Of a stretch of DNA of 64,000 nucleotides, positions 166 to 53,252 are shown piece by piece. The stretch comes from Macrostomum lignano (lineage: Eukaryota). Each line of letters opens with the position of its first letter. The first letter of the stretch is position 1. Made by a program: the position numbers and the translations under genes. Below the pieces are notes generated by a model. The model ran no database searches and was not told the DNA's origin. It saw only the letters and a program-made list of their open reading frames with translations. The stretch lies in NCBI GenBank assembly GCA_002269645.1, contig NIVC01001149.1, forward strand, positions 287,781 through 351,780. Direction: 5' to 3'.

Positions 166-23110
<22,945 letters not shown>

Positions 23111-31502: not shown

Positions 31503-33170
31503 CTACTGCGGCCCAGTTTCAGTCGACTCCCCCCGAGCGCCGGTTCCAACCTTCGAGCAGGCGGCGGTAGCGGAGCGCAGCGATCCGATCAGCTCAGCGA
31601 TGGCGTCTCGGTAGCGCTCTCCGGCGTAAATATAGAGCAGCGGGTTCACCACAGCGTTGGCGGACATCACGATCACGGAGACCACGAAGGCGCTAGACGA
31701 GAGGCTCTGACGTTGACCAATCATATCGGCTGCAACCACAATGAGGCACACGGCAACTGGCAGGTTCATGAGGCAGAAAAGCGACACAGTGAGCACCAGG
31801 ATGAAGAACGTGCGCTGATCCCGCTGGTATCGCTGTTGACCCACCGAGGTCGTGCTGCTGCGGGTGACCCGCCTCTCAACAACGGATGCCCGCGTTGGGT
31901 TGTAGACTTCGATGCTGTAAATGATCAGTATTGCGGTACTATGAAGGCTAGAAGAAGTTGGCAACTACTGGACTCTAAAATCCCTGTAGACCGCTTTTTT
32001 AGATGCGAGATTCATTTTCTAACTGTGAATGAAAGTTGCATGGCACCAAACTGACCAATTGCAGAGATCCAACTTTCCGATTTCTCAAGTAGCATTTCTT
32101 GAAAGTTTAATTCTAGAGCAACATTGTGGTGCTAAAAGACAACTCTGGATGCTACAACACAGAAGCGAAACCAAAGTCAGCTACTATGTAACTTGCCCAG
32201 ACACTGGTATGTCAGGTCGTCCAGACTGTTTTGACTGCTGCTGACCGGGCGGTGACTGCCCGAATCTCACAGTGTGAGCCGGCGCTGCTGCTGGTTCCAC
32301 TGCAGCTGCACCCAAGTCCTGCGGTTTGTCCACTGCTGCTACTGGCGCTACGGCTACCGCTTCAACAGCCGCCGCTGCCAGCACGTCCTGCCTTGAAGCT
32401 GCAACGCCGCCACCGCTGTTGACGGGATCCTGCTGCGACAGGCTGCGGTTGAGTCGGCGACGGTTGATGCACACAACTCGGCCGATGGCGGCGTAGCAGA
32501 AGGTCGACAGCGCCAGCGGGATGACGATCGTCACGATGGAGAGAATTAAGGTGTAGCTGTGATAGAAAACTGCGTCGGGTCGGACGTTGTAGGCGCAGAT
32601 CTCAACCTGGATGCCGTCCTGCAGCTGGGCGGTGATGACGGTGAAGAAGGCCAGCGACGGAGCGGCCATGAGACCAGACACGAGCACGATGGCTGCCAGC
32701 AGGAGGCTGCGCCTGCGGCTGATTCGGCCAATGGGCTGGCCTCCGACAATGCCCTTGTAGCGGTCCAGGCTCAGCAGGCACAGCAGCCAAGTAGTGAGGC
32801 AGCCAAAGCTGATGAGAAGACTGGGGATGAGCTTGCACAGAGCTTCGCCCAGCCGCCAACTGCTGGTTAGGCGGGTGATGCCGAGAAACGGGGTGGTGAC
32901 TGACATCACCCAGCGGCTCAGGCAGACCGCCGTGATAAGCAAGTTAGTCCAGTTGCGCACCTGTTTGTGCCTGACGAACAGGTGAACCATCATCAGGTTG
33001 AGACCGGTTGACAACAAGAAGATCAATACGAAGGCCAAGAACTCAAGCCAGGGCCCCAGCATGTTCTGCCGGTTGAACTGGCTGAAATACGTGAAGACGA
33101 TGTTGCAGGAATTCGTGTCCGGCAGCGGATGGCACAGGTAGGAGACATTGTTTGCCTCTCGACAGCACAT
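31503..33170 (-). CDS. Class A (rhodopsin-like) GPCR, two exons (33170-32197 and 31914-31503)
   Basis: Seven hydrophobic segments, W..G...C in ECL1/TM3, LSLDRY, TM5 IP...CY, TM7 NAVVNPLLY; the phase-2 junction G|IEVYNP uses a GC donor. Confidence 0.9.
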
Positions 33171-34125
33171 TGTAGCCCGCTGTAGAAATCAGTCTCTCTG
33201 GTTAAACTGAAGGACCAGTCTGTCTAATTTGTATGCGGAAATAAAGTACTAGTGTATATTTATGGCGCTCAAGTTTACTTCAGATTAGATAAAACTTCTT
33301 GGATTTTTCCTTCCTTTTTGGGCCTCTGCTATCGAGCGCGGACCAGAGCTGCCCAATACCGGAGCGGCGAGCCGCTCACAGACCAACTGGACTGCCGGTG
33401 CGCCCGCAAGAGTCATCGATAACCCCGGAAGACGGAAAGGGGCGCGGCCGGCCCCACCTCCGGCTCCACCTCCAGCAGGGCAAAAACAAAGTGCTGCGGG
33501 CTTCGCAAACTTGGCGTGCATTGGGATTTGAGGGTCATAAATTTGCCTCTCTCCCTATCTAGAGGGGGAGTGTCTCCCTCCAAACCCTTTGTAGCTTTGC
33601 AACCAAATTTATGCCGTGGCTGAAGCTGTTTTCCTTATGTTGCTATGGCTATGGGGAAAAGTGCAGGCTGGCTTTTGAGGACCTTTTTATGCAGAAAAAC
33701 TGCACAGCCTCAGTGATAAGCAGTGCGGTTGTTCCGGAGTATCCAGAAACTTGTAATGATTCTAAGCCTATAAATGCTACTTCATCAAGGCTGTTCCCTA
33801 CATTCGAATTTGCAAATAGTTATACCGTGTCTGTTTTATGTCGAAATTGTCCCTATAAATCTGGGTTGCGATTTTAGATCTTTCACAATTCGGCCCATAG
33901 CCGCAATATATCCAGTTCTAGGCGGAGGCAGAATTTTATTTTGTTTAATTCGTCTATTTTTTAAATTACATTCACCTTGTGTCCGCTTCATCTTTGATTT
34001 CGGTGGTTGCGGAGCTTCTGGAACCTGATCAACAGATGGCACAGTCTATGGTGCAGAACATGTACGACATCGCTGATCAAACGAACGTCGACGTTTAGAA
34101 AATTTGAAAACTGCTAGCGTCTTCC

Positions 34126-34575
34126 AACTAGTCTCTCGTAACTAGTCTCTCATAAGTAGTCTCTCATAATTAGTCTCTCATAACTATTCTCTTATAGTTA
34201 GTCTCTCATAACTAGTCTCTCATAACTAGTCTCTCATAACTAGTCTCTCATAACTAGTCTCTCATAACTAGTCTCTCATAACTAGTCTCTCATAACTAGT
34301 CTCTCATAACTAGTCTCTTACAGCTAGTCTCTCATAAGTAGTTTCTCATAATTAGTCTCTCATAACTATTCTCTTATAGTTAGTTTCTCGTAACTAGTCT
34401 CTCATAATTAGTCTCTCATAACTAGTCTCTCATAACTAGTCTCTCATAACTAGTCTCTCATAACTAGTCTCTCATAACTAGTCTCTTACAGCTAGTCTCT
34501 CATAAGTAGTTTCTCATAATTAGTCTCTCATAACTATTCTCAATAGTTAGCCCCTCATAACTGGTCTCTCATAAC
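34126..34575. repeat. 14-bp minisatellite (TAACTAGTCTCTCA)
   Basis: Tandem units with block duplication. Confidence 0.95.
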
Positions 34576-36954
34576 CAGTATCCCGTAACATACCATAATT
34601 AGTCTATTATAAGTAGTCAATGCAGACACAGAAATACAGTCATAAGAAGCTCACTTTGAAAATTAAAAATTGACTCAATGTAGTTCATTTAAACTTGTTA
34701 CCGTGCTGCATCATTTGATTCCATGGTTGTCTTTGGAAGCGATCGATGCTCCACGTCATCCACTTCGGACGTTGTCCCTTCAGTGGTTACGCTGCTAGCA
34801 CGGTAGTGGTAATGACGTCTTCATCTGGCTACATCAAATCATTTGATAATCTTCATTTTGGAGCCCATCAAATGATTTGATGGTCCTGGAATTATAGCAA
34901 GTTAAATAATTGACTGCGCGTTCCTGGCTCAGAATGAGCCGAATAACGGTCAGTTAAATAGGCAATCGGATTTTATCTATGAAAAATCCATGTGCACATA
35001 CACATTGACACGAATGTACTGCGTCTGCCAATGTATTGATGATATTGCTGCACGGAAGGACAAACAAGAGACACTCTTGCGCATCAGTGCTTTATTTCTG
35101 ACTAACTGACAGCAGTGGTCGCAATGACTGGCATGGTCTTACGCTGCGCACTCATTGCGTAAAACTGCTGTACGCTCATCATACAAAGCTTCGAAACCAT
35201 TGGGTACGCGGTTGCTAAAAAATGCATTCATGAGCCAATTTGCTGGGGCAGATGGCTTTTGTAGATTTTTTGTGACAATATAGCTTCGGCACTCGTAAAA
35301 AATTGTCTATCTGCCGAACCATACACACAATCTACTGCATTAGGGTGAAAAATTCAGGGCTCAAAAAACCCATAGAAATACGAGTACTGTCATTTTCAAA
35401 GCGCTCCTTTGTGCCGGTCTTTTTTAAAAAGCTTCTAGTCGACGAAATTATAGTCGAAGCAGTGCTCCTGTCCTCCTGTCAGAGACAATTGGTATCGGGG
35501 TTCACCACCAGGGCGCAGATTTATCGGAAGTCGTCGCACATCTCGATGCCAATACCGACAGGTGATATGTGTACTGCCGAGATTCAAACTAAATGTACAG
35601 CAGTTCACAAGTGAATCAAGAATTTGATTTTATATCTGTACATACCTAGGACTACCATCAGACCTAATTACCGAAGCTCCCTGTTCTTAAAATTTTGCCG
35701 ATTAGATGAAAAGAATGGGAAGTACCTGTGCAGCAAAAATGACTGCTCAGGACATTAAGCAGAAGTAATGAATTATTGTACCTGTGCTTCTCCTGCTGTC
35801 TAGCACAGTGGTTTGGGCTCTCCGACTTCTCAAAAGGAAGCATTCTATTAGCTCTTAGTAGTGTCGGTAGTGCTGCCACCAGTTCCTTCAGGTCTCGGCC
35901 TTCGGTGAGGTGAGCTTCCAGTCGGAACGAAATAACGAAGTCAACGAACTCATCACAATGTCCAGATTTGCAGCTCAACGTACAGGGCGTCTCGTCAGCA
36001 GATCCTGCCGGGCTTGGTGGGTGGATGGGAGGGCTGTGTTAGCCTCTCGTAGGCACGGGTTGGCTTTGAGGGGTCTCGGTCAGACCAATAGCAGTAGGTT
36101 AGCGTACGCAGGTTAGTGTACGTGAATTGTTCTATTTTTAGAACTGAAGTCACTTGGGGTCTGCGGGCAGAGTGCGCCAGGCTGTGACTCAGTGTCTATT
36201 TTTAGAAACATAAGTCACTCCTCTCCTTAGAGAAGGGAAGGGCCTTAGGCACGTGATTCTCCCGTAAACAGGACCAGCGAGTGCAATAAACATGTTTACT
36301 GCACTTTAGGACTCCAAGAAAACAAGATCTGTCATGTGACTTGCTCACATGACAGGGGAAACGGCCAACAGCTTGACCTCCAGACTGGAGCGAAACAAGG
36401 ACAGACCACATCAGAGAAGCTGAGGGCTGAGAACAGGAGCACAGAAAACGAGCAGCAAAGGAAAAAAGGGGCAGCAAACAGCCGGACGAAAAGGGGGGGG
36501 GGGGCTGGCCAGCGGCAGACAGCAACCCAGGGCGAAAGCGAGGGCGAGGGAAACTGCTGACTAAGTGTGACGCCTAACCAAACCAGCGGATCACTACAGA
36601 ATCAGGCTCCAAGTGTGACAGCTGAGCGATCGGCGAGTGTCGGATCTCTGTAATATTCTCGTCGAAAGCAACTCAATATTTCAGGCAATCAGCCCTTCCT
36701 CTCGCTTAAAATACGATCTACAACGATTTTTTTCAAAAGCATGTTGCCAACAAATTCACTCAATCCTCTTGAAGCAGAAAGCTGCAGATATCCTGCAAAA
36801 ATATGCTTTCCTATTGAAATGTATCATAGCAAAACAATTGAAAATAAAATTCAGTCTAAAACTGCAGCTATATTGGACTACAGCTGCCGAAAATCAGTTA
36901 GGAGTCATCCAGTTGTGAGACGAATTTATCTGTAATATTTCTGCTGGATCTCGG

Positions 36955-37250
36955 CACTACACGAATGGTGTCAGACACACCTACACGAATGGTCTTACAC
37001 ACACCTACACGAATGGTCTCACACACACCTACACGAATGGTCTCAGAGACACCTACACGAATGGTGTCAGAGACACACCTACACGAATGGTGTCAGACAC
37101 ACCTACACGAATGGTGTCAGAGACACACCTACACGAATGGTGTCAGACACACCTACACGAATGGTGTCAGACACATCTACACGAATGGTGTCAGAGACAC
37201 ACCTACACGAATGGTGTCAGACACACCTACACGAATGGTGTCAGAGACAT
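36955..37250. repeat. 23-25-bp minisatellite (CACACCTACACGAATGGTGTCAGA)
   Basis: Tandem units. Confidence 0.95.
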
Positions 37251-37434
37251 CAAAGGCACTGAGACACTCGGCTGAAATTCATAGAGCAGGTCGAGTGTCA
37301 AGTAGACAATCATTATAAATGTGCAGACCGGAACGTGTTCGTCCCGGCAAGGGACATTCGTTGAGCTCGGTCCGAGTGCCGCTCCGATTGCCAGCAGCAG
37401 CGCCTGTGCTGACAGCTGGATATGCTGGGGTCCC

Positions 37435-37639
37435 TCAGTGACTCAAGCAGTAACTCAAGCAGTGACTCAAGCAGTGAATAAAGCAGTGACTCAAGCAGTG
37501 AATAAAGCAGTGACTCAAGCATTGACTCAAGCAGTGACTCAAGCAGTGACTCAAGCAGTGACTCAAGCAGTGACTCAAGCAGTGACTCAAGCAGTGACTC
37601 AAGCAGTGACTCAAGCAGTGACTCAAGCAGTGACTCAAG
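37435..37639. repeat. 12-bp minisatellite (GCAGTGACTCAA)
   Basis: 17 units, 14 containing TGACTCA. Confidence 0.96.
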
Positions 37640-38129
37640 ATCCTCAGGCAAGTTTCAAGCCACGCTTACAATGAGCTTTGCTGGCTTTATAAAGAAATTG
37701 AGGCCGAATATAAACTTTTTTACTCAAAACCCAAGGTGATCTGAGACTGCTACGATTACAAAGGTTTCAGGCCAACCCTTCAGTGTCAAACCTTGCATTA
37801 TTTCCCGTCTTTTTGCTGCCGATGCGTCGTGCTTAGGAGGCGGCTTGGGTGGCGCGTGAAGCCTGATCTATTCAGCGACTGCGCACCTCTCCTGTCTGCC
37901 GTCTGCCCCCCCCCTCTCCCCGACCTCGTCTTGTGATTGGCTGGGACCAACTGCGTCGACCCATTGTTTTGAACAACGATTCATCCGTGATGCGAGGGAC
38001 TCTCTCACTGCTGCGCGTGGGGGTCTGTATTTGATGTAATTCATTTCTTAAAAATTACTTTAAAAGGTACAAATTTACAAAGCAATAAATGAGCTCTTTC
38101 TCAGATACATGTATGTGTCATAGGATGGA

Positions 38130-38581
38130 CCATAAAATACACCATAGATTACGTCATACGATGTGTTATAGGATATGCCATAGGGTACGCCATAGGATAC
38201 GCCTTAGGATACTCCATAGTGTACGCCATAGGATACGCCATAGGGTACGCCATAGGATACGCCATAGGGTACGCCATAGGGTACGCCATAGGATACGCCA
38301 TAGGATACGATATAGGATACGCCATAGGATACACCATAGGATAGGCCATAGGATGCGATATAGAATACGTCATGTATGTTATAGGGTATGCTATCGGATA
38401 CGCCATAGGATACGCCATAGGATACGCCATAGGATACGCCATAGGATACACCATAGGATAGGCCATAGGATGTGATATAGAATACGTCATATGTGTTATA
38501 GAGTACGCCATAGGATAGGCCATAGGATGCGATATAGAATACGTCATATGTGTTATAGGGTACGCCATAGGATGCGCCATA
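38130..38581. repeat. 12-bp repeat (CCATAGGATACG) with longer super-units
   Basis: Tandem units and duplicated blocks. Confidence 0.93.
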
Positions 38582-38775
38582 GCATTTATTTTCGTCGTGC
38601 AAAAAGGCAAAATTCAGAACATCCTACAAAGGAGTGGAATATTTATACAATAAATCAATTTCGACAATTGAACCTGAGACAAATGCATCGAGCCAATAGA
38701 TTTCAGACTTCATTCATTCAGATTCACTCAGCAGTCGCAGTCAGCCTAGGCGGGTTGGCTGCAAGCTGAGGGTGT

Positions 38776-38789
38776 GTCTCCATGACAAC
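38776..38789 (+). promoter_or_regulatory. RFX X-box-like motif upstream of WSC copy 1
   Basis: GTCTCC-AT-GACAAC fits RTHNYY-WT-RRNRAC; about 72-85 bp before the ATG. Confidence 0.6.
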
Positions 38790-38860
38790 AAATCAGCAAG
38801 GCAGTTGTTACTCAGGTCTTCTCATACAGAGGTTCGAAAATTGACAAATCCAGCGTAGCT

Positions 38861-39622
38861 ATGCTTCTCTGCAGGATTTTCCTGTGCGCTGCTCCGATCC
38901 TGAGCTGCCTGATCTCTGCCGCTCTCTGTCGGCAGTTCCAGACCTTGGACCTCGGCTGCTTCGTTGACCATACGAACAGCAAGAGAGACATGTCAGGCAT
39001 GAAGTACCTGGGCCTGAAGCGCATCGGCAATTTCGATGTCACGCAACATGTCCAACCTGACACCACTTTTGTGCACAGCAACCAGATGACTCACGAGCTG
39101 TGCAGCAAAATCTGCGCTCTGGGCGGCTTCCAGTTCATGGGTCTTCAAGCCAGCGTCTACTGCTTCTGCGGCAACTCGTACGGATCGCAGGGCGCGGCTC
39201 CTGGCTGGGACTGCCGAGATTCCTGCGGTGGAAATTCGAGCCAGAACTGCGGTGGCCCCTATCGAAACCAAGTGTTTGAGCTGAAGTACAACGCCGCGGT
39301 GCCCGGTACAGACTGCATGAGTAAGTGCTGTGTGTTGTGAGTCAGATTTTCCTTGTGGCACCGGGCCTCTCCAATCTCATCATTCCTCCACGCAGACAAA
39401 AATCTGTTTGTCGTCGGGAACCGGACTTTCGTCGAGATCAGCGCTCAGGATGCGCCCGCCTACAGGACGGTGACCGCTGCTGAGCCTCTCTCGTGCGTGC
39501 TGCTGTGCCGCTCCGGCTGCGAGGCGGTGATCTTCAGTCAGCAGCAGCGCCTGTGCCACCTGCTGGAGTTTGCTGCAGTCCCGGCCGCCCTCAGCAACGG
39601 GGACTTCTACGTCCGTGGTTGA
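38861..39622 (+). CDS. Secreted WSC-domain + PAN/Apple-like protein, copy 1 (exons 38861-39320, 39396-39622)
   Basis: Hydrophobic N-terminal signal; LGCFVD..R..MTHELC..IC..GF.FMGLQ...CFCGN..G....C...C.GN..Q.CGG (WSC); exon 2 C..LC...C.AV.F....LC.L; 75-nt GT-AG intron. Confidence 0.9.
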
Positions 39623-41130
39623 TGAAATTTGAATCTGAATCGAACTCGGTATATGAACTCGAAACTCGTTTCTTACTACTTTAAGTATAATAACTCTCGG
39701 CCAAAATTCCAAGCAATTCTGCCCATTCTCTAAAACAAAGTTTATTTGCTAGTTTTTATAAGCTCTTGTCTGCTTTTGTGTCTTGATTTCTGTCGTAAGT
39801 TTTTTATATGTTAAATAAAGAACGACACCCAAAAAATATTAGCAATTTTTTCTCTTTTGCTGCTTCATTCCAAGAAACATCAATTGCGGATGTAAAATTG
39901 ACTTTAAGTTATTTCATATGCAACTGAAGTAGTTCAAGAGACTTCCTTCTTTCTATGTTTTTTTCGGCCAGAATTTGATTGGGCTCTGTGATTTTGTTTC
40001 ACTCGCAGAAGCCGATCGCACATTGTGTGTATATTCTGAGGCATCAGTCGTTTTGTAGCATCTCTAGAGACTCTCTCTGGTCTGCTGAAAGTTAGGTACA
40101 ACCATTGTGGTCTAGAGATAGCAGCTATCTCTGCGGGTAGCTGGGTAGCACCCTGCTCAGTTACTCGCTCAGTTGCAACACTTCCTTTTAAGTCTTATTC
40201 ACACCACCATCAAATGAGCCCTCAAATCAAACGACCGATGTACACAATTTTAATTTGATGTACAACTCATTTGATTACATGAAGTTTAGTCTTGTTTAAT
40301 GGCGGTGTGAACGAGCGGCACGAGACATCCATCGCCGCGTCCATTGCACCATCTCATTCAACACCTGCCAACCATCCAACCTCTCAGACACCAACAACCA
40401 GCACTCATTCTGAAGAGTGGTGGAAGAAGCTTACCGGTAAGAGTGTACGTGGTACTGACTGCAGCAGCATAAAAAGTCTGCGTAAAACTTGCGTTCCGGT
40501 TGCTACATGAAGTTGGCCTTGAGCGAGCCGAAATCAGCCGCGTACATCTGCGGCTCTTAAATTCCTAGTGTTACGCACCCATCTGCTTCAAAAGCGTATC
40601 AAAAGGGTAAGTCTGCATTTATCTAATCTGTTTAGCTAATTTTAGCGTCTAATCCAGTCCGATGGAGAAAGGTGGGCCAAACTGTGGCGCGAATAAAGTT
40701 GAGTCAATTTCCCAAAGCTAGTAATTGTTCTAATTCAAATGAATTTAGCAATCCTGTAGTGTGACTGTGATGTCCAGTAAAATTGCAAAACTCCAGCATA
40801 GAGTCCATTTGTATTGTACGAGCAAAAAATAATTTAACATTATTCCATTTATTCTACCGTCTCAATTAGCGCATGCAACCCCTACTAAAACCTTGAGCCG
40901 TAAGCGTGAACCAATCATTTTAATTCATACCAACGCCTCACTCTCCGAGTCTCAGCTGAAGCTCTTGAGTGAATGTACTCCCGTACACTCAATTCATTCG
41001 GTCTACTCTTTTTTTAATTGAATTCAGATTTCGATAAATGGGCTAAACACTTAGTAAATCGAGCTAATGGATTTCAGTTAGACCCACAGTCACAATCCGC
41101 AAAGCAGCGGAAGCCAGCTTTAAGAGGCGT

Positions 41131-41144
41131 GTCTCCATGACGAC
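41131..41144 (+). promoter_or_regulatory. RFX X-box-like motif upstream of WSC copy 2
   Basis: GTCTCC-AT-GACGAC; about 100-113 bp before the ATG. Confidence 0.55.
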
Positions 41145-41243
41145 AAATCAATAGGGACGCTGATTATTTAGCTCTCTTTTGCACAGAGCTGAGGCAGTCT
41201 GCCTATACAAAATTATCTCTAAAATCCAGTCAAAAAACCATTA

Positions 41244-44200
41244 ATGGCAATGCTTTTCTGCAGGATTCTCTTCTGCGCTGCTCCGATCCTGAGCTGCCTG
41301 ATCTGCGCCGCTCTCTGTCGCCAGTTCGGGATCGCAAACCTCGGCTGCTTTATTGACTATGCGAGTAGCAAGAGAGAAATGACCGGCATGCCGCAGCTCG
41401 GGCTGACACGGGTTGGCAGCTCCGGTGTAACACAGCATGAAGAAGCTTCTGCCGCTTATGTGCACAGCCACCACATGACTCACGAGCTGTGTGGCAGCGT
41501 CTGCGCTCTGGGCGGTTTCCAGTTCATGGGTCTTCAAGCCAAAGGCTTCTGTTTCTGCGACAACTCGTACGGTTCGCAGGGCGCGGCTCCTGACTCGGAA
41601 TGCCATGACGCCTGCAGTGGAAACTCGAACCAGAACTGCGGTGGCTCCTATCGAAACCGAGTGTTTGAGCTGATGTTCAGCGCCGTGGTGCCCGATACCG
41701 CCTGCATGAGTAAGTGCTGCAATTTTTGAGTCAGAAAAGTTACTGTATTTGTGGCACTGGGTCACTCTATTCTTGCTCTTCTGCATCACTCCGTTCTGTC
41801 TTCTCTAGATGGGTATCACAGACCCGGAATAGCGCCGAAAACCAAATTATACCGTAGTAATACCTATCACAAGACCAAGCGATAAACTAAGCACGAGATC
41901 ATAAAATAAAAACATTTGGAATGGTAATAGTTGACGTGACGCGAAAGTCAGGAGCTGATTGTTGTTTAATAACGAATGTGAATGCTTGCGATATATTTGT
42001 AGAATAGCCAAAGTAACTTGACGAGTTAAAGACTGAGAGAAATAGCTTAAATATTGTAAATATTGGATTTCACTGATGCACTGGCACTGTGAGTGGAGAG
42101 AGTACAAAATGGGAGAGACTTAAGGGGCGAGGCAATGGCTAGCGCAAAGATGCACGTGGAACAGACTAGAGTACGCATAGAGTACACAATGATTTACTGA
42201 GTACACGCAGATCGCAAGCTAGAAACAAGGTGACAAAGCGAAGTTAAATAAACAAGCCCCCCCCCACAGTTACCCAGCTCACAAACCAAACAACCGTCAC
42301 TTCATCTCCCCCCCTTCGAATCGAGCTGGTGGCAGGCCCCTTGTCGAACGAATCGGATAGCGAGGCAGCTTCACCGTCGAGGGGCCGGCGGTGCTTTCAG
42401 CCATCGGCTCGGGCCGATGCAACTCGGTTGGCTCCCCGCCCTGCAGTCCGATAGCTTTGCTATCTTCAGCAGATGCAGTAGCGGCGTCGCTGCCACCACT
42501 GCTCTTGGCATCTTGGCAGCTGGTCTGCGGCCTTGACAGCAGCGCATCCTCGTCCGTGGCGCGGGAGGTTGCCGGATCATCGGCTCCGGCCTCGATGCGT
42601 TAACTCAGCTGGTCTGCATGCGCCAGGACGGTGCGACCGCCTTGGCGGGCGATGATGGCCGTGTTCGTCCCTTTCTGACATAGAAACTCGGCCGGCTCGC
42701 GCTCCAGCCCTGCGCCCGGTGCGTACCAGACGTTGGCTCTAATTGGCGTCTTCATTGTGATAGGATTGCGAAGCTGCCGTCCCATGAGCTGTGCTGGACT
42801 CTGGGCCCGACCGGCGTGCGGAATGCGCCTTTAATTGAGTAAGAGTCTGAACAGGAATGAGTTGTACGGCTCCGACGCTTAGTCCTAGGCTGCCGAAGCC
42901 CTCTTGATCGAGCCGACCATCCGTTCCTGAAGTCCGTTTGATTGCGGATGCCTTGGAGGAGTTTTGAGGACTCGACAGCCGATTCGCTCAAGCCAGGACA
43001 GCAGTCCAGCGTCGTGATACTCAGCGGCATTATCACTAACCAGGACGTGCGGGACACCGTTTCTAGCAAACACTGACTGAAGAGCGGCTTTAAAAGTCGC
43101 AGCATCGCGGTTTGGCACTCTCAGGACCTCAGGTTATCCTGACATAGCATCGACTAGAATGAGCACCAGTCCAACCTTCGGGATTGTGGCGTGGTCCATA
43201 TGCACGCGATGCCACGGCTCGTCTTCCTTTGGCCACTGATGTACCGTAGGTGTGCCAGAGGGCCGAATTCGCGTGCAGGTGGGGCAGTTGCGTACGTGCC
43301 GCTCCACGTCCGTGCAATATCCTGGCCACCAGGCCGAGTTGTGAATGAGTGCGCAAGTTGCCATGGTTCCCTGATGCGAGACACTGTGTACCTGATCCAG
43401 GACGCGCTGCCTGAGTGTCGCAGGAATCACCGGTCGATCACCGTAGCAGAGAATGCCGTCGTCTATCACCAAGGCATGGCGAACTGACTTGTACGGCCTC
43501 TCAGCTGGGGAGCATCCTGACCATCTGCTTGATGCGACTCGCTCAGCAATATCTTGGAGTAGACGATCGCGCTGGGTCTCCGCTTGCAGCTCCTCCCATG
43601 GAATCACCGGGCCGCCTGCTCAATGAACCAGACCTTCCAAGGCAGCAGGTTCTGATTCGGATAGTTCACCGTTGCAGTCAAGGCGAGAGAGGGCATCAGC
43701 GTGCGGAATGTGCTCGCCTTTTGTGTAGATCGTGTCAAAATCGAAGGCCATTAGCTTGATCGCCCAGCGAAGTAGCCGAGCGTTCGCCACCTTTGGAAGT
43801 TTCCGCCGCGCTCCGAAGAGAAACTCTAGAGGCCGATGATCTGTCCGTAGAGTGAATCGGGCACCGAGAAGGAATTGCTTGGCGCGTTCCATCGCCCAAA
43901 CGATGGCGAGGGCCGCTCTTTCGATATTCGAATAGCGCGACTCCGTGCTGCTCAACCGTCTGCTAAGGTATATAACCGGGTGGCCGTTTTGGGTGAGCAC
44001 AGCGGCGATGGCCCTCTCACTGGCATCTGTGGTAAGAGTCGTCTCCTTAGTCTTGTCGTAGGGCTGTAGGACTGGCGCACTGCTAAGAATGGCTTTGATT
44101 CGCTCGAAGGCCTGAGTCTGATCGGGTCCCCAACTGAACCTTGCGTTCTTGGTTCGTAACCGGTTGAGTGGCTCGATGATCTGTGAGTAGTTGCGAACGA

Positions 44201-46979
44201 ATCTGCCAAAGAAGTTGGCAAGACCAAGAAAATATTCTAGTTGCTTCTTGTCTTCCGGAGTCTTGACGGCGCGGATCCGATCGACTAGATTTGGATCAGG
44301 AGAAATTCCTCTCTCGCTGACTCTGTACCCGAGAAATGAGACCTCCATAGCCTTGAGGGTTGATTTTTCCAAGTTGATTGACATTCCTGCCTTCTTTAGG
44401 GTAGCTATGACGTTTTTGACTTTTGAGTCGATCTCTGAGTCAGATTTTCCGCCTAGAAGAATGTCGTCCTGATAAACTATTTTGCCGGTGATGTCAGTAA
44501 GGACAGATTCCATTGCCTTTTGAAAGATAGATGATGCAGATTTGAGGCCTGGAACGAGACGCTTATAGCGATAGAGGCCCAAAGGTGTGGCGATGGTGGT
44601 GATTTCTCTGCTGTCTTCGTCAAGCTCTATCTGCAAGTATGCATCCGAGAGGTCGATTTTGGAGAAGTGCGACATTCCAGAGGTCTCCGCAAAGATTGTC
44701 TCCATCTCAGGCATTGGTTACGTATCATTGCACACCTGACGATTAGCTCCTCTTTGAAGTCAGCACAGACGCGCACCTTTCCGTTAGGTTTTAGAACACT
44801 GACAATTGGTGAGGCTCACTGACTCCCTCCGGCTGGAACAGGTTCAGCCTCCATTCGCTTGAGTTCCTCGTTAACCCGGTCTCGCAGGTGAATGGGAACG
44901 GGCCTAGCTGCGCAGTAAAACGGTTTTGCTCCGTCAACAAGGCGAATCTTGGCTTTGAAGTTTTTGAGACATCCTAGCTGGCCGACAGCGTTGATTGTAA
45001 TAGCGTCCCCTTGCAGCTTGATGACGTCCATTCCCAGCAGTCCATGTGGCTTGCTGGCCTCCGTGACGATTAGGTCCAGTGTGACAAAGTTGGTGTCAGT
45101 TTCTAGGGAAGCAGTGAATTCTCCTAGACAGGAAATGCTGGATCCGTCGTACTGCCTGAGTGTTCGCCTGCACCTTTTGAGAGAAGGGCGGCCGAGCTTG
45201 ACCCACAGATTTTGCGGAAGTAGACTCACCTCGGCCCCTGTGTCAATCTGCATGGGCAGGGTCCGACCATGATCTTCGCTTCGTGAAAGAGTCCGTTGCT
45301 ACGCCCTGGAGCGACCACGAAAATGTCGGCTGGCTCTTGGTCTTGATTCTCACGATCGCTTGTTGATTCTTCTTGGGTCAAGTGCACTTCTCTGGATCTG
45401 CAGACCGCCGCAAAATGATTCTTTCGTTTACACTTGGTGCACGTCTGACCGAAAGCCGGGCAACTGCCTTTGGGGTGAGTTGTACCGCAGTAATAGCACC
45501 TGCCTTTACCGGCCGCTCCTGAGGACTTGGCTGGCGCACCGGCCGTTCTTGGTTGACCTGCAAAAGCGATCTCGAGGGGAACGGGCGCGCCTGATGAAGC
45601 GGTGTTGGTCGTGCCTTTATTGTACTGTTGGATTTGCTCGAGCTGCTGCAGGTTTTGCAGGATATCGTCAAGAAGTTTTTCTTCGCCTTGAAGCTGCTCC
45701 AAAATCCTCTTCTTGTGTTCGGCAGAGGCAAGGCCGTCGATTAGCCCTATTGCGATGAGATCGTTTTCCTTGGACTGCTTGGCCCCAAGTTCCTCGAATT
45801 CGCAGAGCGCCGCCGCTGCTCGAAGCCGACGGTAGTAAGTGCTGATCGATTCACCTGGCTCTTGTTTGAGGCTTAGAAATCTGGTGCGTTCAGCGATGAC
45901 CAGCCTCTTCTTAGGCCGGATTTTTGCTGTAACTAGTGTCTCGATTTCGCTAAATTTGAGTGCCTCCAGCTTTTTTGGTGCGGCCATCAGAGAGAGCGTC
46001 CGGATCGCCTGTAGTCCAGCCTTGGACAGGAACAAGTCAGTCTTATCCCGCGCTTCGTCCGTGTCCGTAAGTTTCTTAATGCGGGCCGTGGCGGAAAGCT
46101 GCTGCTTCCATGCCTCAGCGAGTTCAGGATCGTTGAGGTTGAGTTCTTGACTCTGAATTTCGCCTGCTTGCGACGCCATTGACGTGACGCGAAATCAGGA
46201 GCTGATTGTTGTTTAATAACGAATGTGAATGCTTGCGATATATTTGTAGAATAGCCTAAGTACTTGACGAGTTGAAGACCGAGAGAAATAGCTTAAATAT
46301 TGTAAATATTGGATTTCACAGATGCACTGACACTGTGAGTGGAGAGAGTACAAAATGATAGAGACTTAAGGGGCGAGGCAATGGCTAGCGCTATGATGCA
46401 CATGGAACAGAGTAGAGTACGCATAGAGTACACAATGATTAACTGAGTACACGCAGATCGCAAGCTAGAAACAAGGTGACAAAGCTAAGTTAAATGAACA
46501 AGCCCCCCACAGTTACCCAGCTCACAACCCAATCAACCGTCACTTCAAAAGTATTTTCGGCGCTATGATATATTCACCACATTCAGCATCTTCTGAACCA
46601 CTCCATTCTTCGGCATTCCGATCTGGCTCTTCTGGGTACTCCATTCAGCTTCTTCTCAGTCACTCCTTTCTGGCGTCTTTTAGGTTTCTCCGTTGTCGCT
46701 TTTCTGAATAATTTAGGCCATTCTGTTTCGAAATTCCATGCAGACCAGAACCTGTTCGTCCTTGGAAACCGGACCTTCGTCGAAGTCAGCGCTCAGGATG
46801 CGCCCGCCTTCAGAACCGTCACCGCTGCTGAGCCCCTTGCGTGCGTTCTGCTGTGCCACTCCAGTTGCCAGGCGGTGATCTTCAGCCAGCAGCAGCGCCT
46901 GTGCCACCTGCTGGAGTATGCTGCAGTGCCGGCCGCCCTCAGCAGCGCCAGCAGCGGCGACTTCTTTGTCCGCGGTTGA
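41244..46979 (+). CDS. Secreted WSC + PAN/Apple-like protein, copy 2 (exons 41244-41709, 46744-46979); intron carries an LTR retrotransposon
   Basis: Paralogue of copy 1 with the same donor ATGA|gtaagt and the same phase-1 second exon ending FFVRG*. Confidence 0.88.
42305..45270 (-). pseudogene. pol: Gypsy Pol (protease, RT, RNase H, integrase), broken by frameshifts and stops
   Basis: IDTGA protease; SKIDLSDAY and YQDD RT; TDAS and ADALSRL RNase H; H..H..C..C zinc finger; VHMD, VSDNA, HPQSNGLQER integrase motifs spread over several frames. Confidence 0.93.
45226..46179 (-). CDS. gag: Gypsy Gag with two zinc knuckles
   Basis: 317-aa ORF; CYYCGTTHPKGSCPAFGQTCTKCKRKNHFAAVC. Confidence 0.9.
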   Translation of the reverse strand: MASQAGEIQSQELNLNDPELAEAWKQQLSATARIKKLTDTDEARDKTDLFLSKAGLQAIRTLSLMAAPKKLEALKFSEIETLVTAKIRPKKRLVIAERTRFLSLKQEPGESISTYYRRLRAAAALCEFEELGAKQSKENDLIAIGLIDGLASAEHKKRILEQLQGEEKLLDDILQNLQQLEQIQQYNKGTTNTASSGAPVPLEIAFAGQPRTAGAPAKSSGAAGKGRCYYCGTTHPKGSCPAFGQTCTKCKRKNHFAAVCRSREVHLTQEESTSDRENQDQEPADIFVVAPGRSNGLFHEAKIMVGPCPCRLTQGPR

Positions 46980-47709
46980 CAAAGGCTGTGCTGTACTAAG
47001 AGTAGTTTTTTCGTATTAAATTGATCCAAGTCTTTGTCTTAATTTTCTGTAAAATGAAATTCCGCCTTGTTTGTTTGTGTGTGTAGCTCGTACATCTTTC
47101 CTTTTTTTCTGCTCTCTCTTGAGCAGCACCAAGTAGTACGATTAGGAGTACACTCCTCTATTATTGATTGTACCGATGTAGAAACGACCTGGTAATGGAT
47201 CAAGTACTTGCACTGTTACTTCACGCTTGTAGTCGCATCAAAGACTTTAATTCTATGCGATTTCAGAAGTAAAAGCTTCACGCCTTGCTGCCATTTTAGA
47301 GTTTTTTGCTAGCGGTATAATTTCCATTGGCTATGTCTTTTTCACCTCTTCATCGTAAAGGTATAAGGATTTGGCCGAATTCTTGTTATTGTTGCAACGT
47401 CGAATCTACATGTATATGTACGAGTAAATAGAATTTTTACGAGCTACGTGCTGTAAAGCGGGTGTGTTTAACTTCAATAAAGCAGGTGACTGTGGATTGC
47501 GTCGGGTAACCGTAAATTAAACACATTCGGAGTGAGCGGCTGACTAATATCTCTTCGAATACATTTATTGAATCCATTTAGCTGAATACTAAAAAGCATT
47601 AAAAATACAGTATAGGAGAGAGAGGGAGAAATCGTTAAATAAGATTTGACTAATAAAGAATCTGGCATGTGTCCATAAAGGTCGAAATTTCCAAACTGAC
47701 CAAAGCAAG

Positions 47710-47852
47710 TGTGTCAGCACCTGTCCCATGCAGTGTTTGATTGTGTCAGCGCCTGTCACATGCAGTGTGCGATTGTGTCAGTGAATGTCACATGCAGTGT
47801 GCGATTGTGTCAGTGAATGTCACATGCAGTGTGCGGTTGTGTCAGTGAATGT
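47710..47852. repeat. ~32-bp short tandem repeat (CATGCAGTGTGCGATTGTGTCAGTGAATGTCA)
   Basis: About 4 units. Confidence 0.85.
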
Positions 47853-48249
47853 CAGCAGCTACTAACCTTGTGTGAAGCGTGATGCGTGAAAGTGGTGAGA
47901 GAAGCATCACTTGAATAGGAGAAATTTTCCATAGAATAGGGGCTCTAAAAGATCCATCCTAGTCAGGCCACCTGCCGCGGTGTTTATTTCCCGTCACTCC
48001 ACCTGCCGAAAGAGCTACTGCCTTTCCGGTAAGTGTTTTCATCGCTGGCAATCGGCTCAATGGTTCATCTCAAATAGCGCAGAAAGTGAAAAAAAACCTG
48101 AGCTGCAAGCTTTTACGGGTAAAAACCAACAAAAAATGGGTTTATTTAAATGGATTTCCACGAGTTAATACATCCAGCTAATGCATTTCAATAAAAGCCA
48201 GACAGCTCTTAATTAGCACTGCCGATAGACAAGTGGCTGCCTGTTAAGA

Positions 48250-48263
48250 ATCTCCATAACAAT
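48250..48263 (+). promoter_or_regulatory. Degenerate X-box-like motif upstream of WSC copy 3
   Basis: ATCTCC-AT-AACAAT (one mismatch to the consensus); about 93-106 bp before the ATG. Confidence 0.45.
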
Positions 48264-48355
48264 TCGAATCGGCAAAACAGCAGTTTTTAGCCTTTCCTCA
48301 CAGAGGTTTGGAAATGCCTTGATAAAAATTCCAAACTGACGAACCCAGCCCAGCT

Positions 48356-49249
48356 ATGCTACTCTGCAAGATTTTCCTGTGCACCGCTCCAATCCTGAGC
48401 TGCCTGATCTGCGCCGCTCTGTGCCGCCAGTTCCGGACCTCGGACCTCGGCTGCTTCGTTGACTTCGCGAATGGCAAGAGAGAAATGTCAGGCATGAAGC
48501 ACCTCGGTCTATCACGGATTGGCAGCTCCAGCGTAATACAATATGGCGAAGGTGTCATGACTGCTCTCTTCAGCAACCAGATGACTCACGAGCTGTGCGG
48601 CAGCATCTGCGCTCTGGGCGGCTTTCAGATCGCTGCTTTGCAATCGAAATCCTGGTGCTTCTGCGGCAACTCCCACGGGTCGCAGGGCGCTGCTCCTGAC
48701 TGGGAGTGCAAAGACGCTTGTCGTGGAAATTCTAGCCAGAACTGCGGAGGCGACTACCGAAACAGAGTTCTTCAGATGAGCTGCACCAACGGTGAGCTGT
48801 GTTTAGCGCCTCGTTCTGTTGCTATTGGATTTTATAGAAACGCTCATAATCGCCGTATTTGCGCATTTACGAGTAAATAGCAAGTTTTACAATCATTTTG
48901 TTGCCACTGAATTCCAACACGAGTCGAATTCTGCTACCGGCTTGCAGGTGACATTCTCTTCGTCCTTGGAAACCGGACCTTCGTCGAGATCAGCGTCTTT
49001 GATGCGCCGACCCTCGAGACAGTCAGCGCTCCGGATCTCCTAGAGTGCGCGCTCTGGTGTGTTCTCAAAAGTGCCGATTGCCAGGCGGTGGTCTTCAGCC
49101 AGCAGCAGCGCCTGTGCCACCTGCTGGAGTTCGCTGCGGTCCCGGCCGCCCTCAGCAGCGCCAGCAGCGACGACTTCTTTGTCCGTGGCAACAGAGCTGA
49201 TGCTGGCGCAGTTAAGCGCATTTACTCGACTCTATGTTATTTCCTTTAA
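48356..49249 (+). CDS. Secreted WSC + PAN/Apple-like protein, copy 3 (exons 48356-48791, 48948-49249)
   Basis: Same domain layout; donor G|gtgagc, acceptor cttgcag; reads past the VRG end to a TAA at 49247-49249. Confidence 0.85.
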
Positions 49250-49994
49250 TTATTATTTGTTGTTTGGGCGTCTCAGCATAGTTTTCCAACTCAAATTCAA
49301 GTCAAACTAATGGCCCCTATTTGATGCCATACTCACAGCACAGAGCTATACTTTGTCTCCTGTGCCTCCATCCTGGTCGGCCAGTCCAGACTCTTGCCTC
49401 TATCTCAGCCTTTCCCTCTGTCATCTTTAGCTCTTTAGATACTATACATAGCAACCAAATAGAATTCGCTTCTTAGTGTTAATCTAATTGATAAATTTTT
49501 GTTATTCTATGCTAACATAATACGTCATTCGGTCTTATCGCACTGTCTGCAGAGATGTGAAAGTAAAAAAACGGAATAAATGATTATGAAAATGTCAATT
49601 TGCACCGCGCGTATCTTTAATCGCACAGTAATAAATGTTTTTCATTTCCACTGGTGCAATAAACGAAAAAATTGTTTTTTTGGCAAACTTCGAAGTTTGC
49701 ACTTGCTGCGACAGAATTCGCTGCATGGTAACCTGTGCATTTGACTGAATTGGGTCATCAGCCAAACTGAAGTATGCAGATTTCACCTACACAGAAATAG
49801 GAGTCCTTCAAAGCGTTTTACCATCGATATTTAGTGACAGTGGGAGTGTAATGCTTTAAATCTAATGCGGAAGTGAAAGCCATTTTGTCATAGATTTCAT
49901 TTGTGCCCACTGTAAGATTTGGCTTCTTAAAAAAGTGCCCTAAGCAGCCTATCCATTTTGTTTACTTCACTCACAAATTCTTAAAATGGTTGTT

Positions 49995-50490
49995 TTTATT
50001 CTTCTTTTACCGTAGCCGTCATGGCCGTACGGGCGCAACCACCGCCGACCGGTCTATTTCTTTCAGGGCATCCTCCCGCTGCCTTTTCGGTCTTCTTCAC
50101 CTTCTTTCACCTTCAACTTTTCTCTTGAATGTAGACATTTGCAATGGCTCCCTTCTTTGTAATATTTGAGTTTTTTTCGCTTCATGATTTTCCTCCACAG
50201 ATTTTGGTTCTTTTCCCTATGCTTTTTAAACTTTTCTGCAAACTCAGGAATTTATGTTTTCTCCTTTTCATGAAATCCTTACACTATTCTGTAACATGTC
50301 ATTTAAAATGCTTTGAGTGTCTCCATACTTTTCTTCCCCAGAGTCCAGCTCTCGAATTCATGCATGTAGTGCGGTATCGCTAATTTGATCGCTTTTGTGA
50401 TCTTGAGGCGATTCTTCAAACCGACTCCTTTTTAGTCTCCAAAGTTCATAAAGCTGTTGTGTGCCCTTTCACGGGAACGACGCCTATGCC
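49995..50490 (-). mobile_element. Degraded 3' fragment of an RTE-clade LINE
   Basis: Interrupted minus-strand translation ESWTLGKKSMETLKAF*MTCYR...KLKYY...KVEGERR*RRP matches the C-terminus of RTE reverse transcriptases. Confidence 0.65.
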
Positions 50491-51061
50491 GTCTTAACCT
50501 ATTGGGAAGCTGCGACCTCCAGGTCCCCAGCCAGAGCACCCGCCAACGGAGGCAGCGGCGGCTGCCCACTCGACAGCAGCTTCATTATGTTTTTAATTTG
50601 GCCTACGAGTACATGAATATTAAATAAGGTAAGAACGAATGTGCGGTACGGTAGGGTGAGGTGCGAGGTGGCGTGATCAGCGTGCGCACTGGTTGAGAAA
50701 ACTGGAGGGCAGGGGCAGACTGGAAAGTTTGGGCTGGGCGCGAGAACAAAAAAAGGCACTATTGCACAAGCCTTGTCATTGAGCTGGTTGCAACGCCTAT
50801 TCCGATTCTGATCTCTTCCTCCTCTGATTCTGATTCTCCATGATGGTTGCCCCCCCCCCCAGATTGACAGAGTGACGGATCGAGCTGAAACTTTATTTTT
50901 GCAGTGTTCTTAGTTGCACATTTTTTTTCCTGTCCAACGGCGTTCTAAAATATTTTTGCAGAGCAGAGATTTTGTTACTTTTTCGAATATCAATCTGAAT
51001 ATCGATCGGGAAACAAATGCGTGGTATATATAGCATTTCCCGGTCAATTTGGTCCTAGAAT

Positions 51062-52580
51062 CACTCAATTTAATCCGCAATAGAGAACTCCAATTCATTC
51101 CGCCGTCACAAGAGATATGTCTATGACCAAATATGCTGTTTTTTTTCAATTTAATCCGCAATAGAGAACTCCAATTCATTCCGCCGTCACAAGAGATATG
51201 TCTATGACCAAATATGCTGTTTTTTTTCAATTTAATCCGCAATAGAGAACTCCAATTCATTCCGCCGTCACAAGAGATATGTCTATGACCAAATATGCTG
51301 TTTTTTTTCAATTTAATCCGCAATAGAGAACTCCAATTCATTCCGCCGTCACAAGAGATATGTCTATGACCAAATATGCTGTTTTTTTCAATTTAATCCG
51401 CAATAGAGAACTCCAATTCATTCCGCCGTCACAAGAGATATGTCTATGACCAAATATGCTGTTTTTTCAATTTAATCCGCAATAGAGAACTCCAATTCAT
51501 TTCGCCGTCACAAGAGATATGTCTATGACCAAATATGCTGTTTTTTTCAATTTAATCCGCAATAGAGAACTCCAATTCATTCCGCCGTCACAAGAGATAT
51601 GTCTATGACCAAATATGCTGTTTTTTTCAATTTAATCCGCAATAGAGAACTCCAATTCATTCCGCCGTCACTAGAGATATGTCTATGGCCAAATATGCTG
51701 TTTTTTCAATTTAATCCGCAATAGAGAACTCCAATTCATTCCGCCGTCACTAGAGATATGTCTATGACCAAATATGCTGTTTTTTTTCAATTTAATCCGC
51801 AATAGAGAACTCCAATTCATTCCGCCGTCACTAGAGATATGTCTATGACCAAATATGCTGTTTTTTCAATTTAATCCGCAATAGAGAACTCCAATTCATT
51901 CCGCCGTCACTAGAGATATGTCTATGACCAAATATGCTGTTTTTTCAATTTAATCCGCAATAGAGAACTCCAATTCATTCCGCCGTCACAAGAGATATGT
52001 CTATGACCAAATATGCTGTTTTTTTTCAATTTAATCCGCAATAGAGAACTCCAATTCATTCCGCCGTCACTAGAGATATGTCTATGGCCAAATATGCTGT
52101 TTTTTCAATTTAATCCGCAATAGAGAACTCCAATTCATTCCGCCGTCACTAGAGATATGTCTATGACCAAATATGCTGTTTTTTTCAATTTAATCCGCAA
52201 TAGAGAACTCCAATTCATTCCGCCGTCACTAGAGATATGTCTATGGCCAAATATGCTGTTTTTTCAATTTAATCCGCAATAGAGAACTCCAATTCATTCC
52301 GCCGTCACTAGAGATATGTCTATGACCAAATATGCTGTTTTTTTCAATTTAATCCGCAATAGAGAACTCCAATTCATTCCGCCGTCACTAGAGATATGTC
52401 TATGGCCAAATATGCTGTTTTTTCAATTTAATCCGCAATAGAGAACTCCAATTCATTCCGCCGTCACTAGAGATATGTCTATGACCAAATATGCTGTTTT
52501 TTTCAATTTAATCCGCAATAGAGAACTCCAATTCATTCCGCCGTCACTAGAGATATGTCTATGACCAAATATGCTGTTTG
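51062..52580. repeat. 79-81-bp satellite, about 19 units
   Basis: CAATTTAATCCGCAATAGAGAACTCCAATTCATTCCGCCGTCAC(A/T)AGAGATATGTCTATG(A/G)CCAAATATGCTG(T)6-8. Confidence 0.97.
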
Positions 52581-53252
52581 GTTCCACTCAATTTAATCCT
52601 GGGGGCACTTATTTCGCGTATTTATTTTAAAAGCCGTTATAATAAGCAAGAATGAGTGACTCGGAAAGTAGCGCCAGCTTTGTCATTGCTGACGGAGAAG
52701 GAAATCAGGGAAGGAAATTAAAGACCATTAAAAGCAACCATTTTGGCCATAGAAAATGAAAAGCAAGTTTTTACAAAGTAATAGCTTTATTTCCTTACTA
52801 ACGATTAAAATCTTTGCTCCGAGGCTCAATTTTCTATTTAAAATGCTGTTAAATTTCGCAGACATAGATGGTCGAATCTGCTTTTCTAATTATTGCACTG
52901 ACGCAAGTTTTATTTTTATTACGTGTCGTACTAGGTACTTGCGCTGCTTCTAGAAAGTTCTGCTAGTTTCTATTTCAAGCTTTTTCTTTCGTCATTTTAT
53001 TCGTTTTTCATTCGGTCTAACCAGGCCTCACTATGGTTATCTATTCAAGCCTGCTGTACAGTTTCTTGTATACAGTAGCCTTGCATCTTGAGCTGTACCC
53101 ACCCAGTGCGAGCCTACGTACCATAAGCAGATTGAGATATAGACAAAAACAATATAAATGCATGCATAGCATAGTTACAGAACGAATAGAAAAAATAGAA
53201 ACCGAAAATAAGAAGACAGCTGAATTTCATCTTTGTGCTTTGTAGCCTTACA

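Follow-up and report, generated by a model that had tools for sequence, protein, structure and literature searches.

Tandem WSC and PAN-like genes of Macrostomum lignano and the X-box-like motifs in their upstream regions

The gene trio and its family

The stretch analysed here, hereafter the window, comprises 64,000 nucleotides of the Macrostomum lignano genome (assembly GCA_002269645.1, contig NIVC01001149.1, positions 287,781 to 351,780) and carries a tandem trio of paralogous two-exon genes, g1, g2 and g3, each preceded by one copy of a 14-mer that in g1 and g2 resembles the X-box, the binding site of RFX transcription factors. All three genes and the upstream elements discussed with them lie on the forward (+) strand, and each gene has a single phase-1 intron at a homologous position. 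Exon 1 of g1 (38861-39320), whose open reading frame (ORF) and GTAAGT donor were read directly, encodes a signal-like N-terminus and a WSC domain (E 8.9e-14); exon 2 (39396-39622), joined in phase 1 at a CAG acceptor, encodes a PAN-like domain and the stop codon. The spliced translation is 228 aa long, and an AATAAA is found 192 nt past the stop. In g2, exon 1 (41250-41709; WSC E 4.6e-13) is followed beyond a 5-kb intron by exon 2 (46744-46979), which encodes the PAN-like domain and was placed by tblastn and spliced translation. Both the reading frame and the splice sites have remained intact in g2, whose protein of 231 aa would gain two residues from an in-frame upstream ATG at 41244. Exon 1 of g3 (48356-48791; WSC E 2.1e-12) ends at a donor nine codons earlier than those of g1 and g2, and exon 2 (48948-49249) encodes the PAN-like domain (PAN_1 E 3.2e-4, 20.9 bits) with a 19-residue C-terminal extension, for a spliced translation of 245 aa. 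No fourth copy was found in the window by tblastn. The spliced models and translations thus bear out the three paralogous two-exon genes that an earlier reading of the window, made from its sequence only, had proposed.

That sequence-only reading had also given the proteins a signal peptide, a WSC domain and a PAN domain. The WSC domain (PF01822) stands in all three, with 47.5-51.9 bits against a Pfam cut-off of 27.8 (E 1e-12 to 1e-14), and the eight cysteines between residues 33 and 129 of each protein follow the WSC eight-cysteine pattern. The N-terminus is signal-like, the first 23 residues being strongly hydrophobic in each protein (mean Kyte-Doolittle value 2.2-2.3), which suggests that the proteins are secreted; their mature part contains 13-14 cysteines. 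The PAN assignment is the weak part of the architecture. When whole proteins were scanned, PAN_1 (PF00024) matched g3 only, at 20.9 bits and below the cut-off of 21.4; when isolated C-terminal domains were scanned, four of the five family members matched (best E 2.8e-5), and the C-terminal cysteine spacing, C…C-x3-C-x3-C…C, is PAN-like. A profile search of the PDB returned no match to the PAN-like domain, and the AlphaFold model, computed from an alignment with g3 as its first sequence, was unusable (predicted local distance difference test score, pLDDT, 33.6). The proteins are presumably extracellular binders of glycans or of other proteins.

Among 5.8 billion proteins, the relatives of g1 comprise six M. 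lignano proteins and one distant metagenome protein, with no other significant match. The M. lignano relatives are 43-64% identical to g1 by BLASTP, and the four closest are 52-66% identical to it in a family alignment that includes the trio. Five UniProt entries from M. lignano (A0A1I8J1T6, A0A1I8H1W0, A0A1I8G8H0, A0A1I8G6C3 and A0A1I8FDU3), which are partial gene models annotated by domain names only (WSC or Apple domain-containing), have the two-domain architecture of the trio, and the C-terminal signature CQAVIFSQQQRLCHLLEFAAVPAALSSASSGDFFVR is common to the trio and these relatives. The three genes are thereby shown to be tandem paralogues belonging to a lineage-specific family of small WSC and PAN-like proteins. 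Their synonymous divergence (dS) is 0.35-0.56, by which the paralogues are young, and the ratio of nonsynonymous to synonymous divergence (dN/dS) is about 0.4. Fourfold degenerate sites are 66-78% identical in pairwise comparisons and 58% are invariant across all three genes.

X-box-like motifs ahead of the trio

The window contains exactly three copies of the degenerate 14-mer RTCTCCATRACRAY, which start at 38776, 41131 and 48250 on the forward strand; shuffled sequences predict 0.01 copies. The g1 copy, GTCTCCATGACAAC, occupies 38776-38789 and lies 85 bp before the ATG; the g2 copy, GTCTCCATGACGAC, occupies 41131-41144 and lies 119 bp before it (113 bp from the upstream ATG); the degenerate g3 copy, ATCTCCATAACAAT, occupies 48250-48263, 106 bp before the ATG. 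The earlier claims of such a motif ahead of each ATG, and of a position near the -100 typical of X-boxes, therefore both agree with what is found, at distances of 85-119 bp; validated nematode sites span about -60 to -285.

Table 1 of PMC3245922 lists 31 validated X-boxes of Caenorhabditis elegans, among them that of xbx-5 (T24A11.2), a DAF-19-dependent site at -121. The g1 14-mer is letter-for-letter identical to this site. The same 14-mer also precedes C. elegans H01G02.2, which is expressed in ciliated neurons, and the X-box of tub-1, ATCTCCATGACAAC at -183, has a left half equal to that of the g3 copy (PMC3245922). The AT spacer and the validated range of distances to the ATG are likewise common to these DAF-19/RFX X-boxes and the 14-mers of the trio. 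For scoring, a position weight matrix (PWM) of 14 positions was built from 28 of 29 validated worm 14-mers, with xbx-5 excluded against circularity; on this worm PWM the validated sites score 11.3-21.8 bits. At 19.6 bits, g1 exceeds 22 of the 29 validated sites and is the best site in the window, a score expected from shuffles 0.01 times per 64 kb, while g2, at 15.6 bits, exceeds three of the 29 (0.21 per 64 kb). Against the strict consensus GTHNYY AT RRNAAC, g1, g2 and g3 show zero, one and two mismatches, respectively, g1 being an exact match to GTHNYYATRRNAAC; the relaxed consensus RTHNYYWTRRNRAC is fitted by g1 and g2, and g3, which has lost both outermost G/C positions, fails at the terminal C.

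The proposal that all three 14-mers fit the RFX X-box is accordingly upheld for g1 and g2, by consensus and by the range of the PWM, and fails for g3. The scoring against shuffled controls that had been suggested as a check, run here on the window, places g1 in the top quartile of the validated nematode sites, g2 in their low range and g3 below them. Judged by their letters, the 14-mers of g1 and g2 are X-box-like, and more strongly so than the sequence-only reading could establish, whereas this resemblance is absent from g3. A match of such quality at such a position is unlikely to have arisen by chance, even when the many recognisable motif families are counted.

The reading that we tentatively favour, and to which we give slightly less than an even chance, is that the three genes inherited an RFX-type site within a proximal promoter that they share. 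The 14-mer would have descended from a genuine RFX-type X-box of the ancestral gene, and of the present sites that of g1 would still be strong, that of g2 moderate and that of g3 largely decayed. Bound to the 14-mer as a dimer, about 100 bp upstream of the ATG and about 45 bp upstream of a pyrimidine-rich tract that we call Block C, RFX would contribute to the transcription of g1 and g2. The cells concerned would be ciliated ones if RFX acts canonically; if the precedent of the family, given below, holds, they would be those of a secretory gland, for instance the prostate. RFX winged-helix genes are present in flatworms (a tapeworm, for instance, has an rfx3-like one), and no relevant study of RFX in Macrostomum emerged from a literature search. 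The nematode X-boxes have been validated by mutagenesis or by daf-19 dependence and belong to genes of ciliated neurons, whereas the sites of the trio are known from sequence, one copy is degenerate, and the putative target genes seem to encode lectin-like proteins that are secreted.

Conservation and competing explanations of the upstream region

A number of results weigh against an inherited RFX site, and they concern the g3 copy, the comparison with Drosophila and the conservation of the upstream region. The g3 copy scores 10.8 bits on the worm PWM, below all 29 validated sites (minimum 11.3), and shuffles reach this score 3.6 times per 64 kb, or 0.011 times per 200 bp. On a half-site PWM made from the 14 validated dRFX sites in Table 2 of PMC2375033 (Laurencon 2007), g1, g2 and g3 score 12.6, 10.3 and -0.9 bits, where no training site scores below 14.6, so that g1 and g2, too, fall below all the fly training sites, which favour GTTGCC/GGCAAC. 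Whether a Drosophila gene depends on RFX, moreover, cannot be predicted from an upstream X-box match alone (PMC2375033). The fly half-site PWM under-scores the 14-mer relative to the worm PWM, and the half-sites of g1 and g2 do occur in validated fly dRFX targets, GTCTCC in CG14870 and GACAAC and GACGAC in CG3259 and CG15161. Because it ignores the spacer, the fly matrix gives the coding 14-mers GCTTCTGCGGCAAC and GTTTCTGCGACAAC, which belong to the CFCG/DN motif of the WSC domain, the same high rank as the 14-mer of the promoters; these coding sites are unranked under the full worm PWM and were dropped as a control. The list of conserved fly X-box candidates includes the gene of a WSC-domain kinase, Wsck, which is not among the validated targets.

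With respect to conservation, the region from about -190 to the ATG is alignable among the paralogues at roughly 71% identity (z 12-15), and 27% of the columns are invariant in a three-way alignment from -220 to the ATG. Beyond it, no homology was found at -200 to -400, in the 3' flanks, in the inter-gene spacers or in most of the intron sequence (blastn, E <= 0.01 for spacers, flanks and introns); within the introns, alignment is limited to the first 75 nt of those of g1 and g2. The homologous segments (38670-39622, 41050-46979 and 48160-49249, their starts being approximate) thus begin about 190 bp before the ATG and end exactly at the stop codon. The 3' untranslated regions (UTRs) and the inter-gene spacers are unalignable despite the identity of the fourfold sites, a contrast for which possible causes are constraint at the codon level, or a fast turnover of indels and repeats outside the coding sequence. 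Taken as a whole, the proximal upstream region looks retained, which speaks for the RFX-type site. Gene conversion was considered as a source of the promoter similarity and rejected, since identical synonymous codons do not cluster into significant runs (P 0.2-0.5).

Within this retained region, the window of the 14-mer has 10 of 14 positions invariant, a value equalled or exceeded in 5.4% of column shuffles, in a comparison of three paralogues only. The copies differ pairwise at one, three and four of the 14 positions, which is not below the divergence that fourfold sites predict (P 0.15-0.55), nor below the one predicted by the rate in the aligned upstream sequence (P 0.05-0.68). The 14-mer itself is therefore not distinguishable by conservation, and the claim that it is more conserved than its flanks is not sustained among the three paralogues. 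The accompanying claim that most other upstream sequence has diverged holds beyond about -190, and fails for the 190 bp or so that still align. Since the paralogues are young and the motif has diverged no less than the neutral proxies, the case for RFX rests on the quality of the match and not on conservation.

The distribution of the changes within the 14-mer is also unfavourable. The variable positions 1, 9, 12 and 14 are mostly high-information positions of the X-box (g3 is changed at 1, 9 and 14), while none of the three copies departs from the others at the low-information positions 3, 4 and 11; with so few changes, the pattern is only a hint. It bears on the improbable alternative that the core CTCCATRAC is bound by another factor, for example a YY1-like zinc-finger protein with a CCAT core or a bZIP protein on TGAC, the outer X-box positions being irrelevant. 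CCAT is the core of YY1-like sites, and TGAC belongs to the bZIP consensus. Such a factor would suit the ten invariant positions (TCTCCAT.AC.A), which take in the spacer and the low-information positions, and the placement of three of the four variable positions at high-information ones, but a shorter core leaves unexplained why the full 14-mer of g1 is identical to a validated X-box.

The best-conserved 14-nt window of the upstream alignment is not the 14-mer but the core GCYAATRSATTTCA of a second box, Block A, with 11 of 14 positions invariant, a value reached in 0.9% of column shuffles, which is a further point against giving the 14-mer a special status. Block A lies 69-85 bp upstream of the 14-mer, at 38691-38705 in g1 (AGCCAATAGATTTCA), 41062-41076 in g2 (AGCTAATGGATTTCA) and 48176-48190 in g3 (AGCTAATGCATTTCA). 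Its identification as a CCAAT box was rejected, CCAAT being present in g1 only and replaced by CTAAT in g2 and g3. About 30-40 bp upstream of it a looser second RATTTC core is seen (AATTTCGA, GATTTCGA and GGATTTCCA at 38651-38665, 41024-41045 and 48143-48160), and Block A may thus be duplicated. About 110 bp separate the g1 copy of Block A from the end of a tandem array of (ATAGGATACGCC)n at 38119-38582, which lies upstream of it.

Between the 14-mer and the ATG lies Block C, a pyrimidine-rich tract that ends in CAG/AG at 38813-38831 in g1, in …CTCTCTTTTGCACAG/AG at 41170-41188 in g2 and in …CCTTTCCTCACAG/AG at 48287-48305 in g3. The G of the CAG is at 38829, 41186 and 48303, that is, 44, 46 and 44 nt past position 10 of the motif. 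In favour of the RFX-type site, the 14-mer has kept its orientation, its distance to the ATG and its spacing to Block C throughout the trio. Block C looks like a 3' splice site, as the acceptor of a spliced leader (SL) trans-splice or of a 5'-UTR intron, or else it may lie near the transcript start. Were it a used acceptor, the 14-mer would fall in an outron or 5' intron and would act at the RNA level rather than as part of the promoter, for example in a distant branch-site region, where TGAC/TAAC would read as URAY. We consider this very improbable. The tract recurs at nearly the same distance from the A at motif position 10 in all three genes, its pyrimidine content is about that of the real intron acceptors of the trio, and in M. 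lignano, according to the literature, SL trans-splicing onto YTNCAG acceptors affects 21-30% of the genes; but none of the three Block C sites fits YTNCAG exactly, 44-46 nt is long for a branch distance, and trans-splicing in this species mostly affects conserved genes and genes of stem cells rather than those specific to the lineage. An X-box in the promoter is, besides, compatible with an acceptor further downstream. The window does not contain the SL sequence of M. lignano. An A/T-rich, TATA-like insertion follows Block C, before the ATG, in g2 (TATACAAAA at 41203-41212) and g3 (GATAAAAAT at 48320-48330) and is missing from g1, and the transcription start may therefore differ among the three genes.

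Possible expression of the trio and the surrounding window

The only precedent for the expression of such proteins in the genus, as far as annotation allows them to be compared, is the prostate gland. An in situ hybridisation screen of M. lignano delivered 76 prostate-limited transcripts, which are candidates for seminal-fluid components, and at least 23 of the 76 are of the WSC type by BLAST annotation, with lengths of 500-1100 nt; some of these have as top match an oyster 'Plasminogen', possibly by way of a PAN/apple domain. Mlig-pro46 and RNA815_80.4 are prostate WSC proteins, and candidates such as Mlig-pro46, Mlig-pro5/RNA815_80.4 and RNA815_17071.1 resemble the trio in being small secreted WSC proteins that are lineage-expanded and encoded at multi-copy loci, M. 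lignano seminal-fluid candidates in general mapping to multi-copy gene clusters. It is thus possible, although we think it well short of an even chance, that the resemblance to the X-box is incidental, that the trio are gland-cell genes, most likely of the prostate and its seminal fluid, driven by elements such as Block A, and that the 14-mer has been kept through the youth of the duplicates. The dN/dS of the trio fits fast-evolving reproductive proteins, the divergence of the 14-mer is compatible with neutrality, and Block A is the more conserved of the two elements. An incidental resemblance has nevertheless to account for the g1 14-mer, which equals a validated X-box letter for letter, lies at a distance from the ATG that is typical of such sites and scores 19.6 bits, when about 0.01 such matches would be expected per 64 kb. 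The link to the prostate, moreover, is at the level of the family only: the likeness between the Mlig-pro candidates and the trio is one of make-up, and none of 18 published Mlig-pro primer pairs for RNA interference (RNAi) matches the window at <=3 mismatches. We know of no indication that prostate gland cells are ciliated.

The inherited RFX-type site and a glandular expression would be compatible if RFX served a non-ciliary function here, and RFX factors are described as regulating non-ciliary programmes too (PMC5838959). By their sequence, the trio are plausible as a new RFX target family. More doubtful is a direct control by RFX over these secreted, glycan-binding WSC-PAN proteins as a family that evolves rapidly and expands in tandem, be it that they are a product of multiciliated epidermal or sensory cells or that an RFX module has been co-opted into non-ciliated gland cells such as those of the prostate, and the label of a ciliated-cell lectin family, under which the genes had been presented, is not established. 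If RFX does drive the family, the X-box regulon would reach beyond the genes of ciliary structure to extracellular lectins, and g3 would represent decay of the box after duplication. A working box would provide a testable case of RFX control over secreted lectin-like proteins rather than parts of the cilium, in a genus that allows RNAi and transgenesis, and the strong, moderate and decayed boxes of a single tandem array would form a natural allelic series for the decay of promoter sites after duplication. If the box fails, the locus would serve as a caution against taking a letter-perfect 14-bp match for evidence of regulation when it is repeated in young paralogues.

The 5-kb intron of g2 contains a full-length Ty3/gypsy-like long terminal repeat (LTR) retrotransposon on the reverse strand (41945-46547, -), with its coding region split into separate ORFs. 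The insertion seems fairly recent, as the LTRs, at 41945-42304 and 46192-46547 (about 360 nt each), have 95-97% identity. Pfam matches include RVT_1, RNase H, an integrase zinc-binding domain, a gag aspartyl protease and gag, and the best matches of the reverse transcriptase have 69-71% identity.

Elsewhere in the window, the second-best score on the worm PWM, 15.7 bits, belongs to ATAGCCATAGCAAC at 33639-33652 (-), about 470 bp upstream of an ORF for a rhodopsin-family seven-transmembrane (7TM) receptor (32184-33170, -; 7tm_1 E 2e-24), for which no homologue was found at E <= 1e-10 among the 5.8 billion proteins. An Rfam search found no RNA families in the window. Minisatellites are unusually abundant, with 36 rows from Tandem Repeats Finder (TRF), as seen at 1800-23700, 34100-38600 and 47700-52600; the arrays include (CCAA)x405 at 9136-10753, a 48-mer repeated 34 times at 12885-14519 and a 79-mer repeated 19 times at 51065-52579. 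An ORF at 60916-61725 (-) has an RNase H domain (E 1e-6) and is probably part of another retroelement.

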